The position numbers and the translations under genes are program-made. This document shows positions 7,001-16,180 of a stretch of 64,000 bases of DNA, one piece after another. How positions within the stretch are numbered: the stretch's first letter is position 1; every line of letters starts with the position of its first letter. The stretch is from Macrostomum hystrix. Taxonomy: Eukaryota > Animalia > Platyhelminthes. The stretch spans positions 1,178,001 through 1,242,000 of the forward strand of contig CATNEN010000031.1 of assembly GCA_950097015.1 (NCBI GenBank), given 5' to 3'. The notes under the pieces are model-generated. The model did not search any database. It was not told the DNA's origin and was given only the letters and a program-made list of their open reading frames with translations.

Positions 7001-10000
7001 CAGTGATTGTAGGTAATTTGTTGCAGTGATTGTAGGTAATTTGTTGCAGTGATTGTAGGTAATTTGTTGCAGTGATTGTAGGTAATTTGTTGCAGTGATT
7101 GTAGGTAATTTGTTGCAGTGATTGTAGGTAATTTGTTGCAGTGATGGTAGGTAATTTGTTGCAGTGATTGTAGGTGATTGGTTGCAGTGAATGCAGTTGA
7201 TTGGTTGCAGTGATTGCAGGTGATTGGCTCCAGTGATTGCAGGTGATTGACTCCAGTGGTTGCAGGTGATTGGCTTACGTGATTGCAGGTGATTGGCTTA
7301 CGTGATTGCAGGTGATTGGCTGCAGTGATTGCAGGTGATTGACTGCTTTCCACAAACGCATCTGCCCCGCAGCAAAGCCACATGCTTTTTACCTCAATCT
7401 GATGCCCGGTGCATTCTGGCTGGCGGGCCGTGAGGCGTCTGTTAGCTTTAGCTCAGATCGCGCATTTCCGCTTCCGATGCACACCTGTTTGCTCATTAGG
7501 ACAGGATCGGGTGGTTCAAGTACTTTGGCGCTAACAGGGGAGAAGGTCAGTTGGCTACCCCACAATGTTGGCTGAGTCTTCAAAAGTTTGGCAAAGGTAC
7601 ACATTATTACTCTACAACCTAACACAACCCATAGACTACTTCATTCGACAATGGCTTATCGACGCTGAGCAGCGCGTTCGGGTTGGTCGTTGATTCCACC
7701 ATGCAAGGTGGATCCATCAAGTGTTCATCTAGTTTTCTAGAGGGCAACACAATTGAAATGACAAAAGAAATACCAAACATTTATAGTAAGCTTATACTGC
7801 CGAAGTAAATTCAAGATAACTCACAGCACTGACCCACCCCCATGTTCCCAAGCACTGCCCAACCCCCATATCCCCTAGCACTGACCCACCCCCATGTCCC
7901 CTAGCACTGACCCACCCCCATGTCCCCCAGCACTGCCCAACCCCCATGTCCCCTAGCACTGACCAACCCCTATGTCCCCTAGCACTGACCCACCCCCAAG
8001 TCCCCTAGCACTGACCCACCCCCCAAGTCCCCTAGCACTGCCCAACCCCATGTTCCCAAGCACTGCCCAACCCCCATATCCCCTAGCACTGCCCAACCCC
8101 ATGTCCCCTAGCACTGCCCAACCCCCATGTCCCCTAGCACTGCCCGACCCCCATATCCCCTAGCACTGATCAACCCCCATATCCCCTAGCACTGCCCCAC
8201 CCCCATATCCCCTAGCACTGATCAACCCCCATATCCCCTAGCACTGCCCCACCCCCATATTCCCTAGCACTGACCCACCCCCATGTCCCCTAGCACTGAC
8301 CCACCCCCATGTCCCCTAGCACTGACCCACCCCCATGTCCCCTAGCAATGACCCACCCCCATGTCCCCTAGCACTGACCCACCCCCATGTCCCCTAGCAA
8401 TGACCCACCCCCATGTCCCCTAGCAATGACCCACCCCCATGTCCCCTAGCAATGACCCACCCCCATGTCCCCTAGCAATGACCCACCCCCATGTCCCCTA
8501 GCAATGACCCACCCCCATGTCCCCTAGCAATGACCCACCCCCATGTCCCCTAGCACTGACCCACCCCCATGTCCCCTAGCACTGACCCACCCCCATGTCC
8601 CCTAGCACTGACCCACCCCCATGTCCCCTAGCACTGACCCACCCCCATGTCCCCTAGCACTGACCCACCCCCATGTCCCCTAGCAATGACCCACCCCCAT
8701 GTCCCCTACCCCGATACCGATTGTCTTCTGACCAAGAACACATCTTCTCAAACGCAGCTCCTTGCGAGAGTCGCTTGCTTCTGTTAGAGAACTCTACCAA
8801 TGGAGTACGCTTCACTGTGCACACATCTCCGCCCGGTGAGTGCAAGACAGCCGTTCACACCTGTCACCTGCTGCATAATGACGAAAGCATAAAACTGCAA
8901 GCCGTAAGGGTGAGTATCGCAACTGAATGCCTTTAAGTAAGCGAAGGTTATTTCCGTTTGTTTAAAATAATTAGTTTGCAATGGAAATTTACTAAGTCTT
9001 GTTGCCTGTGCTCCATTAGTCATCTGGGAGATAAATTTGAGAGCTGACAATCTGTTCTCAGGCGGAGGGAACCAGCAGTACCTACTCACTGCCGGCCCGC
9101 CTAGACTGGTGCGGCCCCGTGTGGATTAACTGCTCCGTGACCCAGTCTGGACTCTTTCAAGCATTGGAAAGCTTTGAACTGCGCGGCTTGAACTGTCAGA
9201 AAGGTAAATTATCGATTAAATAGCTAATCCTGCCAGAAAGTGCAACTGTCAGCTGACCCATCCACCCTCCCATTACAGTGCAAAAACTCAGCCTAGCGTA
9301 CATTCCAACTATTTTGCTTGTGTGCAGCTTGTCGATAATCCTGGCAGTCGGGACGTTATGGCAAAAACGACGACGTCAAGTCCGTCAGAGCAAGCCTGCC
9401 TATGTGGTCAGGCGTCCATCGACGATCCAGGAGTTCAGCGGAGTGGTGCCTGGTGCGCCTGGTGTAATCTATGAGCATGGCTACGAGGATGTTGATAACG
9501 AATACCAGAAGCTTCGCAGAATCGAAAATCAGATCGTATCGGAGTACGACCTGCTCTCACCCTCAGCCAATCATGCTAGCAACTCCCCTGACAAAGCAGA
9601 GGATCTTTACGACCTGCTCTCACCCTCAGCCAATCATGCTAGCAACTCCCCTGACAAAGCAGAGGATCTTTACGACCTGCTCTCACCCTCAGCCAATCAT
9701 GCTAGCAACTCCCCTGACAAAGCAGAGGATCTTTACGACCTGCTCTCACCCTCAGCCAATCATGCTAGCAACTCCCCTGACAAAGCAGAGGATCTTTACG
9801 ACCTGCTCTCACCCTCAGCCAATCATGCTAGCAACTCCCCTGACAAAGCAGAGGATCTTTACGACCTGCTCTCAACCTCCGCTCATGCTGATGGCAGCTC
9901 CACGGCCGAAGCTGAAAATGCGTACGACCTGCTCTCACCTTCAGCCAATCGCTCTGGCAACCACTTGGGAGACGGGAGAGAGTACTTTCAAGGTGCTAAC

Positions 10001-11705: not shown

Positions 11706-12071
11706 CTGTCAGCTGGTTAATGAGAACTGTCACTCGGTAAAAATAAGACAAAAACGGTCAGAAAGCTGTTAGTGGGTTGGCTACTTTCTATGTGGTAAAT
11801 AATCCCTCAGCAGGTAAAGAAGCTGTCCACAGGCAAGGCAGCTTCCAACAGGTAAATAAACTTAATCTTAGTTAAGATTCTTAATCTTAGTTAACAGTTA
11901 CCTGCTTCAACAGTTAGTGTGAGAGATACAATTCAGACTACTGACAACAGTAGAAAAGCAAAGGCTTGGCTGCAAAACTCTCACATAACATAACACTAAA
12001 AAAGTATCGCCATAAAATGGCAATGTTAAAAGAAGACTTCTGTGCACACTAAGAGTGGTGGGAGAGGACTG

Positions 12072-12135
12072 CGTGTGGCTATGGCTGACTGACGAAGGCA
12101 AACAAGCCAGAAACCGGTCTCGGTCTGCCAGCACG
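12072..12135 (+). ncRNA. Minimal type I hammerhead ribozyme motif (Penelope/retrozyme-like)
   Basis: Core CUGACGA (12089-12095); stem II GGC/GCC around AAACAA; GAAAC-CG-GUC (12110-12119); stem I GGCUGA(12083-88)/UCGGUC(12120-25) extended by CGUG-UGGC/GCCA-g-CACG. One non-canonical A.A position closes stem II. Confidence 0.7.
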
Positions 12136-12254
12136 AGGTTCGTTCCCCGCTTTTAGTGTATTACAATTGGTTCCCTGCCGTGAGCGTACCTGGCCACCCC
12201 AGGTACCTGCAATGATGCAGTCAACAGTTAAGCTGTGAACAGTTACCTGCTTCT

Positions 12255-13030
12255 TTAACTGTCAACAGGTAAAGAATCTGTCAACAGATAAAGAATCTGT
12301 CAACAGATAAAGAAGCTGTCAACGGGTAAATAAGCTGTCAACAGGTAAAGAAGCTGTCAACAGGTAAATAAGCTGTCAACAGGTAAAGAAGCTGTCAACG
12401 GGTAAATAAGCTGTCAACAGGTAAAGAAGCTATCAACAGGTAAATATAAGCTGTCAACAGGTAAATATAAGCTGTCAACAGGTAAAGAAGCTGTCAACGG
12501 GTAAATAAGCTGTCAACAGGTAAAGAAGCTGTCAACAGGTAAATATAAGCTGTCAACAGGTAAAGAAGCTGTCAACAGGTAAATATAAGCTGTCAACAGG
12601 TAAAGAAGCTATCAACAGGTAAATAAGCTGTCAACAGGTAAAGAAGCTATCAACAGGTAAATATAAGCTGTCAACAGGTAAAGAAGCTGTCAACAGGTAA
12701 ATATAAGCTGTCAACAGGTAAAGAAGCTGTCAACAGGTAAATATAAGCTGTCAACAGGTAAAGAAGCTATCAACAGGTAAATAAGCTGTCAACAGGTAAA
12801 GAAGCTATCAACAGGTAAATATAAGCTGTCAACAGGTAAAGAAGCTGTCAACAGGTAAAGAAGCTATCAACAGGTAAAGAAGCTGTCAACAGGTAAATAA
12901 GCTGTCAACAGGTAAAGAAGCTATCAACAGGTAAATATAAGCTGTCAACAGGTAAAGAAGCTGTCAACAGGTAAATAAGCTGTCAACAGGTAAAGAAGCT
13001 ATCAACACGTAAAGAAGCTGTCAACCGTTA
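12255..13030. repeat. ~19-bp minisatellite (AACAGGTAAAGAAGCTGTC)n with 18-20-bp variants, ~40 copies
   Basis: Direct tandem repetition; degenerate copies extend back to ~11800. Confidence 0.93.
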
Positions 13031-13609
13031 AGTAAGCCATCGGAGTGAGTGTTTCTAATCAGTAGGCGACAGTTGAAAGCGGCACGCGAGTTTAATCGTG
13101 AAACTCTACAGAGAAATGAATAATGTTATCCGCGTCCCACGCAATTAAGCGGATCGCAAGGCTTTTTGCATACTTTTTTCTATACTATATGCATTTAAAA
13201 CTTACCTGTCAGTCACTAATGCTTTGTCTACCTCTTTTATGCCACTGAGGATTTGGGATAAGATTAAGAAGCGGTGGGATGGGATTATAGTTAGTGGTAG
13301 GTCGCCACCGACAGCTTTTGCGAATCCAAGAGTTTAAATGCCCAGACTAGACTGTAGGGCGAGTGTGAACCTGTGTCCTCACTTCTCTTAATTAGGCTTA
13401 AGCTTAGCCAGCTTAACCAGCCAGCCAGCTTAGCCAGCTCTGAGATGTAAGTCAGCAGGACACTAATCTACTACTCTGTAACAAGGCTAGCACGGTTTGA
13501 CGCAATGAGCTTTCACTAAAATATCTGAAATGTTTCATTAAATTATTATCAAAGTCTCTGGTTAAAAGTAATTAGGGAAAGTTTTTTAAGTATTTAGAAA
13601 ACTAAGTAA

Positions 13610-14340
13610 GAATGCCTGAGAAACGTAAGAATGTCCTGAGAAACCTAAGAATGTCCTGGGAAACCTCAGGTAAATAATCCTGGGACGTTGATCAATCAGA
13701 GTGTCCAGGGAAACTTAAGAATGTCATGGGAAACCTAAGACTATTCTGGGAAACCTTAGAGTGTCCAGGGAAACTTAAGAATATCATGGGAAACCTTAGA
13801 TTGTCCTTGGAAACCTAAGAATGTCCTGGGAAACCTTAGAGTGTCCTTGGAAACCTAAGAATGTCCTGGGAAACCTTAGAGTGTCCAGGGAAACTTAAGA
13901 ATGTCCTGGGAAACCTCAGGTAAATAATCCTGGGACGTTGATCAATCAGAGTGTCCAGGGAAACCTTAGAGTCCAGGGAAACTTAAGAATGTCATGGGAA
14001 ACCTAAGACTATTCTGGGAAACCTTAGAGTGTCCAGGGAAACTTAAGAATGTCATGGGAAACCTAAGACTATTCTGGGAAACCTTAGAGTGTCTAGGGAA
14101 ACTTAAGAATGTCATGGGAAACCTAAGACTATTCTGGGAAACCTTAGAGTGTCCAGGGAAACCTTAGAGACCAGGGAAACTTAAGAATGTCATGGGAAAC
14201 CTAAGACTATTCTGGGAAACCTTAGAGTGTCCAGGGAACCTTAAGAATGTCATGGGAAACCTAAGACTATTCTGGGAAACCTTAGAGTGTCTAGGGAAAC
14301 TTAAGATTGCCCTGAGAAGCCTAAAGAAGTCTTGGAAAGC
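13610..14340. repeat. Composite ~20-bp minisatellite (GGGAAACCTAAGAATGTCCT and variants)
   Basis: Recurrent GGGAAAC(C/T)T(A)AG units plus a duplicated block CCTCAGGTAAATAATCCTGGGACGTTGATCAATCAG at ~13665 and ~13915. Confidence 0.9.
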
Positions 14341-14939: not shown

Positions 14940-16180
14940 AGACTGAGGGAGATGAGACTGGGGGAGATGAGACTGGGGGAGATGAGACTGGGGGTGATGA
15001 GACGGGGGGAGATGAGAATGAGGCAGATGAGAATTGTGGAGATGAGACTGGGGGAGATGAGACTGGGGGGAGATGAGACTGGGGGAGATGAGACTGGGGG
15101 AGATGAGACTGGGGGAGATGAGAATGAGGGAGATGAAACTGGGGGAGATGAGACTGGGGAGATGAGACTGGGGGAGATGAGACTGGGGGAGATGAGACAG
15201 GGGGAAATGAGACTGGGGGTGATGAGACTGAGGGAGATGAGACTGGGGGAGATGAGACTGGGGGAGATGAGACTGGGGGAGATGAGAATGAGGGAGATGA
15301 GACTGGGGGAGATGAGACTGGGGAGATGAGACTGGGGGAGATGAGACGGGGGGGAGATGAGACTGAGGGAGATGAGAATTGGGGAGATGAGACTGGGGGG
15401 GAGATGAGACTGGGGGAGATGAGACTGGGGGAGATGAGACTAGGGGAGATGAGAATAAGGGAGATGAGACTGGGGGGAGATGAGACTGGGGGAGATGAGA
15501 CTGGGGGAGATGAGACTAGGGGAGATGAGAATAAGGGAGATGAGACTGGGGGGAGATGAGACTGAGGGAGATGAGACTGGGGGAGATGAGACTGGGGGGG
15601 AGATGAGACTGGGGGAGATGAGACTAGGGGAGATGAGAATAAGGGAGATGAGACTGGGGGGAGATGAGACTGAGGGAGATGAGACTGGGGGAGATGAGAC
15701 TGGGGGGGAGATGAGACTGGGGGAGATGAGACTGGGGGAGATGAGACTAGGGGAGATGAGAATAAGGGAGATGAGACTGGGGGGAGATGAGACTGAGGGA
15801 GATGAGACTGGGGGAGATGAGACTGGGGGGGAGATGAGACTGGGGGAGATGAGACTAGGGGAGATGAGAATAAGGGAGATGAGACTGGGGGGAGATGAGA
15901 CTGAGGGAGATGAGACTGGGGGAGATGAGACTGGGGGGGAGATGAGACTGGGGGAGATGAGACTGGGGAGATGAGACTGGGGGAGATGAGACGGGGGGAG
16001 ATGAGACTGAGGGAGATGAGAATTGGGGAGATGAGACTGGGGGGGAGATGAGACTGGGGGAGATGAGACTGGGGGAGATGAGACTGGGGGAGATGAGACT
16101 GGGGGGAGATGAGACTGGGGGAGATGAGACTGAGGGAGATGAGACTGGGGGAGATGAGAATAAGGGAGATGAGACAAGGG
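14940..16180. repeat. 15-bp G-rich minisatellite (GAGATGAGACTGGGG)n
   Basis: Direct tandem repetition; accounts for ORFs 14904-16248. Confidence 0.95.

Follow-up and report, generated by a model that had tools for sequence, protein, structure and literature searches.

A truncated LTR element at the edge of a minisatellite

The 64,000-nucleotide stretch of Macrostomum hystrix DNA analyzed here (the window) contains a short insert, the main part of which is a 248-bp long terminal repeat (LTR) on the forward strand (positions 11918–12165). This repeat starts with TGTGAGAG, ends with GTATTACA (the family end is GTGTTACA) and has TG...CA termini. At least 40 scored copies in the genome are homologous from exactly 11918 to 12165, and the LTR of the window shares 97.5% identity with the majority of the young copies, for which the majority-rule LTR string served only as a yardstick of divergence. 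The LTR is followed on the same strand by 36 nt of internal region (12166–12201), which, by alignment to the complete copy L004, opens with the 2-nt spacer AT and continues with a sequence resembling a primer-binding site (PBS), TGGTTCCCTGCCGTGAGCG (12168–12186). Homology to complete elements ends at 12201 (positions 1–280 of the L004 alignment), and the copy lacks the remaining internal region as well as the 3′ LTR. The junction sequence at 12202–12220, which contains the palindrome CAGGTACCTG and does not align with complete copies, belongs neither to the element nor to the clean satellite and is probably the scar of a deletion that took the 3′ part of the element.

The surrounding DNA is repetitive. 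A degenerate AACAG-type host satellite repeat, TCAACAGTTA, is found at 11907–11916 and 12221–12230, a second block, AACAGTTACCTGCTTC, also flanks the element on both sides (11893–11908 and 12240–12255), and a host minisatellite of about 39 units of 19 bp, delimited with Tandem Repeats Finder, occupies 12259–13025, the element having inserted into its edge. In a preliminary description of this locus, the unit was placed at 11917–12220 and the 10-bp direct repeat around it was proposed as a target-site duplication (TSD). Both assignments have to be revised: the first base of the family copies is 11918, the last base of the repeat is 12165 and the alignment with complete elements extends to 12201, while the 10-bp repeat is part of the host satellite and the TSD of the family is 5 bp long. 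The expected 5-bp target copy at this site is GTTAG (11913–11917).

The genome contains approximately 193–250 copies of the LTR, and any internal sequence is present at 6 places. Exact 5-bp TSDs flank 23 of the 24 cleanly delimited solo LTRs, and those of two more (L023 and L029) were recognized by eye. The complete copies L004 and L005 each consist of an LTR, a 108-bp internal region and a second LTR, with the TSDs ATAGG (L004) and GTGTC (L005), and partial copies with internal sequence are L002, L033 and L036 as well as the one in the window. Tandem arrays, which had been considered in the preliminary description, were not encountered, as the family shows two repeats at most, placed around the 108-bp internal region.

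The internal region of L004 and L005 opens with AT followed by TGGTTCCCTG and closes with GAAGAAGGG followed by TGTATA, which places the purine tract GAAGAAGGG 6 nt (TGTATA) upstream of the start of the 3′ LTR. Separated from the LTR by 2 nt, the PBS TGGTTCCCTG is complementary to the tRNA-Glu(CTC/TTC) 3′ end plus CCA, the genes for this tRNA ending in ...CCCGGTCAGGGAA. Over its first 10 nt, the PBS in the window is an exact complement of this tRNA end with its CCA, and complementarity reaches 17 of 18 positions if one gap is allowed; the usual copies diverge past 10 nt. In one copy (C38:24385654–24385687, reverse strand), adjoining pattern matches show the LTR end, AT and at least 23 nt of unbroken complementarity to tRNA-Glu with its CCA. 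A search for a tRNA that fits all 19 nt of the PBS in the common copies (...CACNGCAGGGAA) gave 25 pattern matches, none of which was a tRNA gene. Two loci with the same tRNA 3′ end plus CCA, L074 and L075, are 62-nt tRNA-like retro-copies unrelated to the LTR element.

The family encodes nothing. Searches for an autonomous partner with a box combining the LTR end and the PBS, or with a perfect 18-nt PBS, returned only the family itself, two single sites and one unrelated 106-bp array. Same-strand pairs of LTR copies 4–5 kb apart (C1:26762748/26767892 and C5:6040131/6044174) were rejected as autonomous elements because they have no PBS after the first copy or have flanks in common; they are solo LTRs or segmental duplicates.

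The TG...CA ends, which are of the DDE-integrase type, the 5-bp TSDs and the tRNA-Glu-type PBS indicate that the family moves by the LTR-retrotransposon route. Elements of the TRIM/SMART kind have two short LTRs, a tiny non-coding internal region that is essentially PBS plus purine tract (PPT), and 5-bp TSDs, and they need an autonomous partner. The family described here shares with them the short LTRs, the tiny internal region of little more than a PBS and a purine tract (here 6 nt short of the 3′ LTR), the 5-bp TSDs and the presumed dependence on a partner. We consider it very probable that 11918–12201 is a 3′-truncated copy of a TRIM-like non-coding LTR retrotransposon, and the earlier view of the locus as a non-coding mobile insert is borne out. 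The family departs from ordinary TRIMs in two respects, namely a ribozyme motif within the LTR and solo LTRs that outnumber two-LTR copies and are younger than them. We know of no report of a ribozyme motif in the LTR of an ordinary TRIM.

A different class of element had been suggested for the insert, either a solo Penelope-like pseudo-LTR or the monomer of a non-LTR (tandem) retrozyme mobilized by a Penelope-like reverse transcriptase (RT) with GIY-YIG. Such elements form tandem or partial-tandem units with larger or variable TSDs and linkage to RT plus GIY-YIG (PMC7229834, PMC7761336), and the definition of metazoan non-LTR retrozymes excludes LTR, PBS and PPT and specifies larger TSDs (PMC7229834). 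The dimer-type helix III of the motif described below is indeed like that of the hammerhead ribozymes (HHRs) of Penelope-type elements and metazoan retrozymes (PMC4209133). In the family, however, the TG...CA ends are fixed, the TSDs are uniformly 5 bp long and both a PBS and a purine tract are present; its repeats number two at most and are kept apart by a distinct 108-bp internal region, and no two copies enclose an interval of ORF size that starts with a PBS. A Penelope-like or non-LTR origin is accordingly highly improbable, and of the earlier proposal it is the retrozyme-like life style that persists as a reasonable reading.

A type I hammerhead-like motif in the LTR

The motif is located at 12071–12142 on the forward strand, in the same sense as the LTR, at the tip of an imperfect hairpin of about 40 bp into which the 3′ half of the LTR folds. 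As read from the sequence and as aligned to the Hammerhead_HH9 (HH9) model, the 5′ strand of the proximal helix I (GGCUGA, 12083–12088) pairs over 6 bp with UCGGUC (12120–12125), a distal helix (12072–79/12127–34) lies beyond a UAU/U internal loop, and the core C3–A9 is CUGACGA (12089–12095). Helix II (12096–12109) has a 3-bp GGC/GCC stem (12097–99/12106–08) with the loop AAACAA and is closed by A12096 opposite A12109. G12–A14 and helix III (12110–12119) comprise GAAA (12110–13), the palindrome ACCGGU (12113–18) and C17, which is C12119. Cleavage is predicted after C12119, which is position 202 of the LTR (between C202 and U203). All of these elements, including the core, the stems, the palindrome, C12119 and the 10-bp repeat, are found where the preliminary description had placed them, and HH9 aligns in the same register, so that a type I hammerhead-like motif with a dimer-type palindromic helix III is present as had been claimed.

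The set of hammerhead core positions, C3-U4-G5-A6-N7-G8-A9, G12-A13-A14, A15.1-U16.1 and H17, is complete in the motif (A12113/U12118 and C12119 supplying the last two). Three helices surround the core, and helix I is open and contains the 5′ and 3′ ends, which is the type I topology. In the monomer, helix III has 1 bp and a palindromic loop of 4 nt, and in the dimer it extends to 6 bp. The “canonical metazoan HHR” has been defined by a helix I of 6 bp, a helix II of 4 positions and a helix III of 1 bp plus a palindromic 4-nt loop (PMC4209133), and the flatworm motif has the same layout in all three helices. The G10.1-C11.1 pair that sits directly on A9/G12 is absent from it, a G-C pair being found one step further in; the pair may be regarded either as substituted by A.A or as bordered by an unpaired A in each strand. 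An additional base after A9, on the 5′ side of helix II, recurs in Penelope-type HHRs (PMC4209133); an additional base on the 3′ side, in the opposite strand, was not found described in the hammerhead literature examined.

In a search of 96 nt, Infernal aligned HH9, the type I model, at 20.8 bits (E = 0.0024), compared with a gathering score of 52. The hammerhead surfaced only in this 96-nt search, the E-value mode over 551 nt giving only noise, and the 64-kb window had no Rfam match at gathering thresholds, RF00163 included. A genome search with RF00163 returned a different family, an abundant tRNA-like repeat (loci L037–L045) with a canonical type I HHR composed of CUGAUGA, GCUC/GAGC, GAAA and a CGCG palindrome. 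It should be noted that this accepted family is also under gathering (HH9, 36.6 vs. 52; RF00163, 31.4 vs. 34), which indicates that the threshold is strict for this type of helix III. Our own descriptor, the canonical metazoan type I HHR relaxed to admit the A.A apposition, has a single site on both strands of the 64-kb window and no match in 100 Mb of Markov-random sequence, and in 288 kb of fetched loci it found only the LTR family with the A.A motif and the accepted tRNA-like HHR family. Chance matches to the broad relaxed descriptor are estimated analytically at approximately 0.1–0.4 per 220-Mb genome, which makes chance improbable for one window and non-negligible for a whole-genome scan.

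These results bear on the possibility that the likeness is coincidental and that the LTR hairpin of a plain TRIM or solo LTR family merely carries CUGANGA and GAAA in its internal loops. The expected number of chance matches, the HH9 E-value of about 1 after rescaling to the genome and the lack of any match at Rfam thresholds are consistent with such a coincidence, as is the absence of covariation among the copies; these are 94–100% alike, and the few changes in stems are transitions to wobble pairs that are also compatible with CpG decay, the family being too uniform to furnish evidence of covariation. Several observations argue in the opposite direction. The descriptor was empty on the 100 Mb of random sequence. 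Features that lie outside it also fit a hammerhead: helix I is interrupted by an internal loop after exactly 6 bp and followed by a distal helix, loop 2 has 6 nt and is rich in A, helix III is palindromic, and the motif lies in sense orientation within a retroelement repeat. An association of hammerheads with repeats of this kind is known, and the same genome holds several real HHR families. We regard coincidence as unlikely, and the support for a real HHR in the LTR family as moderate.

Conservation and folding of the motif

At least 193 genomic copies match the 43-nt HHR sequence within 3 mismatches, and at least 100 of these are identical to it. The A.A apposition, which had been taken in the preliminary description as a possible lesion of this copy, is the state of the family: either A differs in only 4 of about 193 copies, and the caveat applies to the family as a whole. 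When a subfamily with the canonical G-C at 10.1/11.1 was sought, only these 4 single-copy variants were found. Differences per column amount to 0.60 in the HHR region vs. 1.02 in the rest of the LTR, a contrast too weak to show selection. A single exact-pattern scan of metagenome contigs for relatives outside this genome gave 0 matches. In the complete copy L004 the motif is present in each LTR, at a spacing of 350 nt, and both LTRs of L005 carry a version with a mutated, dead core (CUGAUAA, G8 to A). Given that the dead core is common to both of its LTRs, L005 was reverse-transcribed from a template without a working ribozyme.

The RNA of the LTR folds with −84.6 kcal/mol (z = −5.15) and has the motif at its apex. 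Cofolding of two copies of the motif gives a double hammerhead joined by a 6-bp intermolecular ACCGGU helix, with −54.3 kcal/mol vs. 2 × −23.4 kcal/mol, and this double hammerhead is 7.5 kcal/mol better than two monomers. The minimum-energy fold of the monomer is a competing register, GACUG/CGGUC (−23.4 kcal/mol), whereas the catalytic fold has −15.4 to −19.9 kcal/mol. The predicted circle of 346–350 nt folds with z values of −2.5 to −4.6.

The motif may alternatively derive from a real hammerhead, captured for example from a Penelope-type or retrozyme repeat, and be inert through A.A, the family then being an ordinary TRIM that spread from linear LTR-to-LTR transcripts and the long LTR hairpin with its palindromic tip having another role, such as RNA dimerization or packaging, or none. 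The replacement of the most conserved helix II pair by A.A throughout the family, the copying of L005 from a dead-core template, the preference of the monomer for a non-catalytic register and the low covariance-model score all speak for an inert motif. A mismatch at this pair, U10.1-U11.1, does occur naturally in HHRs documented as active, and according to earlier mutagenesis U.U is the best-tolerated mispair at 10.1/11.1 and others are poorly active (PMC3088659), so that A.A should be worse than U.U. On the other hand, at least 100 copies retain a letter-perfect 43-nt motif, although this is weak evidence because the copies are young, and the dimer fold is thermodynamically favored. Natural HHRs that are stabilized by tertiary contacts also bear core-adjacent changes better than minimal HHRs do. 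The extreme excess of young solo LTRs considered below is easier to explain with a circular template (PMC4918200). We consider it rather improbable that the motif is inert in this manner. Whether the motif really self-cleaves appears close to evenly balanced, with a slight lean toward the negative.

Relation to known retrozymes and a possible life cycle

Reviews and a 2026 preprint (bioRxiv 10.64898/2026.07.22.740005) distinguish two kinds of retrozymes, the LTR kind of plants with type III hammerheads and the non-LTR, Penelope-linked kind of animals with type I hammerheads and no LTR, PBS or PPT. The plant LTR retrozymes have a type III hammerhead, a 4-bp TSD, a tRNA-Met PBS and Ty3/gypsy boxes (PMC4918200; Cervera, Urbina & de la Pena 2016). 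The flatworm family resembles them in being non-coding and TRIM-like with a sense hammerhead motif in each LTR, in the placement of the PBS immediately behind the 5′ LTR and of a purine tract ahead of the 3′ LTR, in its short TSDs and numerous solo LTRs, and in the predicted excised RNA, which would consist of one permuted LTR plus PBS and PPT (PMC4918200). In contrast to the plant elements, it resides in an animal, its motif is of type I with a dimer-type helix III rather than type III and has helix II closed by A.A, its TSD is 5 bp rather than 4 bp, and its PBS corresponds to tRNA-Glu rather than tRNA-Met. It is also smaller (LTR of 245 bp, internal region of 108 bp and a predicted excised unit of approximately 350 nt vs. 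600–1000 nt in plants) and has a GC content of about 45%.

With the metazoan non-LTR retrozymes and Penelope pseudo-LTR HHRs (PMC7229834, PMC4209133, bioRxiv 10.64898/2026.07.22.740005), the family shares the type I fold, the 6-bp helix I followed by an internal loop, the A-rich loop 2, the 1-bp helix III whose palindromic tetraloop implies a dimeric mode of action, the unit of approximately 350 nt and the animal host. Those elements differ from it in forming tandem arrays or pseudo-LTRs without PBS, PPT and TG...CA ends, in their larger or variable TSDs and in keeping G10.1-C11.1. The tRNA-like HHR repeat of the same genome, which ranks with Schistosoma Sm-alpha among the closest known systems, has the same style of helix III as the LTR family; it differs from the LTR family in having tRNA-type Pol III boxes and a canonical helix II and in being of the non-LTR kind, with no similarity beyond the core. 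No published report of a hammerhead in Macrostomum was found in the literature search.

A life cycle can be proposed that equals the one put forward for plant LTR retrozymes, with a type I in place of the type III hammerhead. A transcript across both LTRs of a complete copy would bring two motifs together, which would pair through ACCGGU and form a double hammerhead. The RNA excised in this way, one permuted LTR plus PBS and purine tract, could be closed into a circle by a host RNA ligase. Reverse transcription would be primed by tRNA-Glu and carried out by the RT of a candidate autonomous LTR element, and the integrase of the element that supplies the RT would insert the cDNA.

The population of copies may be read in the same terms. 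Solo LTRs exceed two-LTR copies by about 40 to 1. With LTR-LTR identities of 94.2 and 93.4%, the two-LTR copies are old, while the solo LTRs are approximately 98.7% identical to the majority, an age contrast that may be biased because the aligned copies are the best-scoring 40 of 251 candidates. For plants, solo-LTR cDNAs have been proposed to arise from circular RNA (PMC4918200). By analogy, the surplus of young solo LTRs is in keeping with one-LTR cDNAs that are copied from a circular template and integrated directly.

We consider the chances evenly divided that the family is an LTR element of the TRIM kind whose motif works as a double hammerhead in a retrozyme-like cycle. The fuller model, i.e., an animal LTR-type retrozyme with an active type I, dimer-dependent hammerhead, an unprecedented A.A at 10.1/11.1, a circle of approximately 350 nt primed by tRNA-Glu, mostly one-LTR cDNAs and a borrowed integrase, is put forward more tentatively, as a possibility somewhat short of even.

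If the motif is inert, what remains is a young but otherwise ordinary TRIM family whose LTR is structured. A hammerhead motif in the LTR of a protein-less LTR element is, in any case, so far described only from plants, and activity of the motif would make the family an LTR-type retrozyme of an animal, equipped with a type I HHR. The joining of a type I hammerhead to an LTR/PBS/TSD chassis in a flatworm would then constitute a third combination, in which ribozyme-driven circular-RNA retrotransposition had been adopted independently on an LTR chassis. The family also offers a compact system of approximately 350 nt in which it can be tested whether circular templates give one-LTR cDNAs and whether a hammerhead can function when two purines face each other at the most conserved position of helix II. 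If true, the proposed cycle would suggest that hammerheads have been recruited repeatedly and have turned miniature LTR elements into circular-RNA-based parasites.

Carrier of the hammerhead motif

In the 220-Mb, 42-contig eukaryotic assembly searched, the 304-bp insert of the Macrostomum hystrix window had at least 251 candidate relatives, the best 40 of which were 89-95% identical to it. Family copies started at a fixed base (window position 11918, TGTGAGAG...), and most ended at a fixed base corresponding to 12165 (...GTGTTACA), while a minority ran on beyond this LTR end. Both ends were located automatically for 24 solo copies, of which 23 were enclosed by exact 5-bp duplicates of unrelated sequence; two more solo copies with 5-bp duplications were judged by eye. 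At two loci (L004 and L005), complete copies consisted of the repeat, 108 bp and the repeat again, with outer 5-bp duplications of ATAGG and GTGTC, respectively. The 108-bp internal region opened with AT and TGGTTCCCTG... and closed with GAAGAAGGG, followed by TGTATA. Given the fixed ends, the 5-bp target-site duplications (TSDs) and the internal region bearing a primer binding site (PBS), the carrier has the hallmarks of a miniature, non-coding LTR retrotransposon (TRIM) mobilized by an integrase. These are features of an LTR element instead of those of the Penelope pseudo-LTR or tandem non-LTR retrozyme proposed in the preliminary description. In the predicted RNA fold, the LTR's initial 68 nt (11918-11985) formed a separate hairpin in which TGTGAGAG paired with CTCTCACA, which hides the integrase-end sequence.

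The window copy (11918-12201) aligned to positions 1-280 of the complete element, including the LTR, spacer and PBS, with 36 nt internal, and was without the remaining internal region and the 3' LTR. The next 19 nt (12202-12220) were similar neither to the element nor to clean satellite. The unit bounds originally drawn, 11917-12220, must be revised, as family copies begin at 11918 and element homology stops at 12201. The insertion lies on the margin of a minisatellite with 19-bp units. The 10-bp repeat TCAACAGTTA, previously read as a TSD, is indeed present on both sides, but it reflects the periodicity of the host satellite, and the family TSD is 5 bp; a second block on both sides, AACAGTTACCTGCTTC, is likewise host satellite periodicity. 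The expected right-hand 5-bp TSD copy is gone together with the 3' part of the window element. Minisatellites with periods of 63, 19, 20 and 15 bp crowd the insertion (window 9545-9950, 12259-13025, 13607-14324 and 14940-16000+), and the one with the 63-bp period is a coding repeat. A fairly young copy at another locus (L002, reverse-complement view) had kept its 5' LTR and a full internal region, but its 3' LTR broke off after ~8 nt and no TSD adjoined the break; this is a deleted form comparable to that of the window copy.

The hammerhead motif and its putative activity

All hammerhead ribozyme (HHR) elements listed in the preliminary description were found at their positions within 12071-12142 of the plus strand. 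Read from the sequence, they are the core CUGACGA (12089-95), a GGC/GCC stem with the loop AAACAA (12097-12108) and A12096 and A12109 on either side, GAAA (12110-13), the palindrome ACCGGU (12113-18), the predicted cleavage-site nucleotide C12119, a 6-bp helix I (12083-88/12120-25) and, past a UAU/U internal loop, a distal helix (12072-79/12127-34). With a helix I of 6 bp, a helix II of 4 positions and a helix III of 1 bp plus a palindromic tetraloop, the architecture is that of the canonical metazoan type I HHR as defined in PMC4209133.

Rfam at gathering thresholds gave no match in the whole window, and its E-value mode gave no hammerhead on 551 nt. When the search was confined to 96 nt, the Hammerhead_HH9 model (type I) scored 20.8 bits (E = 0.0024) in a register identical to that first described. 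The canonical type I hammerhead of an abundant tRNA-like repeat in the same genome, used as calibrator, was itself below threshold with both HH9 (36.6 bits) and RF00163 (31.4 bits). A descriptor of the canonical metazoan type I HHR (PMC4209133), loosened to admit A.A, matched a single site in the window, the 12071-12142 motif, and its matches in 288 kb of fetched loci were limited to the LTR family and the calibrator family; 100 Mb of Markov-random sequence gave zero matches. Because 0.1-0.4 chance matches are expected analytically per 220-Mb genome, a chance origin of the motif is unlikely for a single window, yet chance may account for it when judged against a scan of such size.

Putative self-cleavage by the LTR hammerhead stands a little short of an even chance. 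In its favor, the motif keeps the full core and runs in the same sense as the LTR, and it lies at the tip of a ~40-bp hairpin in the predicted LTR RNA fold (-84.6 kcal/mol, z = -5.15 versus shuffles). When two copies were cofolded without constraint, they formed a classical double hammerhead in which ACCGGU made a 6-bp helix III and helix I paired in trans (-54.3 kcal/mol, versus -46.8 for two monomers), and differences per column were somewhat lower in the HHR region (0.60) than elsewhere (1.02). Against it, the G10.1-C11.1 pair is replaced by A.A or, equally, displaced by one unpaired A per side. This A.A at helix II, noted earlier, is present, but it is not a fault of the window copy alone, as all but 4 family copies share it. 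G10.1-C11.1 is the most conserved pair besides A15.1-U16.1, and a natural U.U, said to be the best-tolerated mispair there, is known (PMC3088659). Penelope-type HHRs often carry an additional base between positions 9 and 10.1 (PMC4209133). No precedent for A.A at 10.1/11.1 was found in the literature consulted. Also counting against activity, the minimum-energy fold of the monomer adopted a competing register, the copies are too uniform to show covariation, and the L005 copy carries a dead core, CUGAUAA, in both LTRs, and this copy, at least, must thus derive from a template lacking a functional ribozyme.

Copy census, proposed tRNA-Glu priming and a possible life cycle

The 43-nt motif, from helix I to helix I, occurred at least 193 times in the genome within 3 mismatches, at least 100 of them exact. 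Internal-region sequence was found at only 6 places, in 2 complete and 4 partial copies, the window copy among the latter. The two complete copies, with LTR-LTR identities of 94.2 and 93.4%, are old; the sampled solo LTRs had a mean identity of 98.7% to their own majority sequence, a sample skewed to well-preserved copies because the best-scoring 40 were taken. On two contigs (C1:46310-145738 and C5:5967388-6070939), identical solo LTRs with identical 3' flanks recurred every 23-48 kb; large duplications near contig ends, either segmental or tandem, have thus multiplied single insertions. A genome pattern search found no autonomous element with the same LTR-end/PBS box.

The tRNA-Glu(CTC) and tRNA-Glu(TTC) genes of the genome end in ...CCCGGTCAGGGAA, to which CCA is added; thus, the first 10 nt after the 2-nt spacer are an exact complement to the tRNA-Glu 3' end and an exact PBS. 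With one gap permitted, the PBS of the window copy matches tRNA-Glu at 17 of 18 positions. The pattern of LTR end plus NNTGG yielded one extra copy only, on contig 38 (G000:C38:24385649-24385687, minus strand), where adjoining pattern matches give an LTR end, then AT and at least 23 nt complementary without interruption to tRNA-Glu plus CCA, exceeding the usual 18-nt PBS; it has neither the 5' half of the tRNA nor the usual internal region. This copy looks like a cDNA whose plus-strand synthesis ran into the tRNA primer, and, if so, it would directly evidence tRNA-Glu priming.

An identical 62-nt tRNA-like 3' fragment with a CCA end, comprising the T arm and acceptor 3' strand of tRNA-Glu type, lies at two fetched loci (L074:1498-1559 and L075:1462-1523), of which ARAGORN called a tRNA-Asp(GTC) in L075 only; the fragments look like retro-copied tRNA pieces or heads of another repeat. 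At G000:C26:559001-564421, at least 23 units repeat in tandem every 106 bp, each carrying TAACA+A+TGGTTCCCTG, a cassette resembling an LTR end plus PBS.

By analogy with PMC4918200, a transcript through both LTRs would bring together two motifs separated by 350 nt (the spacing is 346-350 nt in L004 and L005), which could pair via the palindrome and each be cut after C202. The resulting circle would contain a single continuous LTR together with the PBS and purine tract; tRNA-Glu would prime a borrowed reverse transcriptase, and a borrowed integrase would insert the product with a 5-bp TSD. Circular templates have been proposed to yield solo-LTR, full or multimeric cDNAs (PMC4918200). Such a template would explain why young copies are almost all solo and two-LTR copies old; ordinary LTR-LTR recombination predicts the opposite age trend.

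Among known elements, LTR retrozymes contain type III HHRs and occur primarily in plants, and non-LTR retrozymes contain type I HHRs and occur mostly in metazoans (10.64898/2026.07.22.740005). A literature search for "hammerhead ribozyme" and Macrostomum returned no paper joining both. If the motif is not a working or recently working hammerhead, the family would be an ordinary young TRIM family; if it is, the family would be a new variant of the known retrozyme elements.
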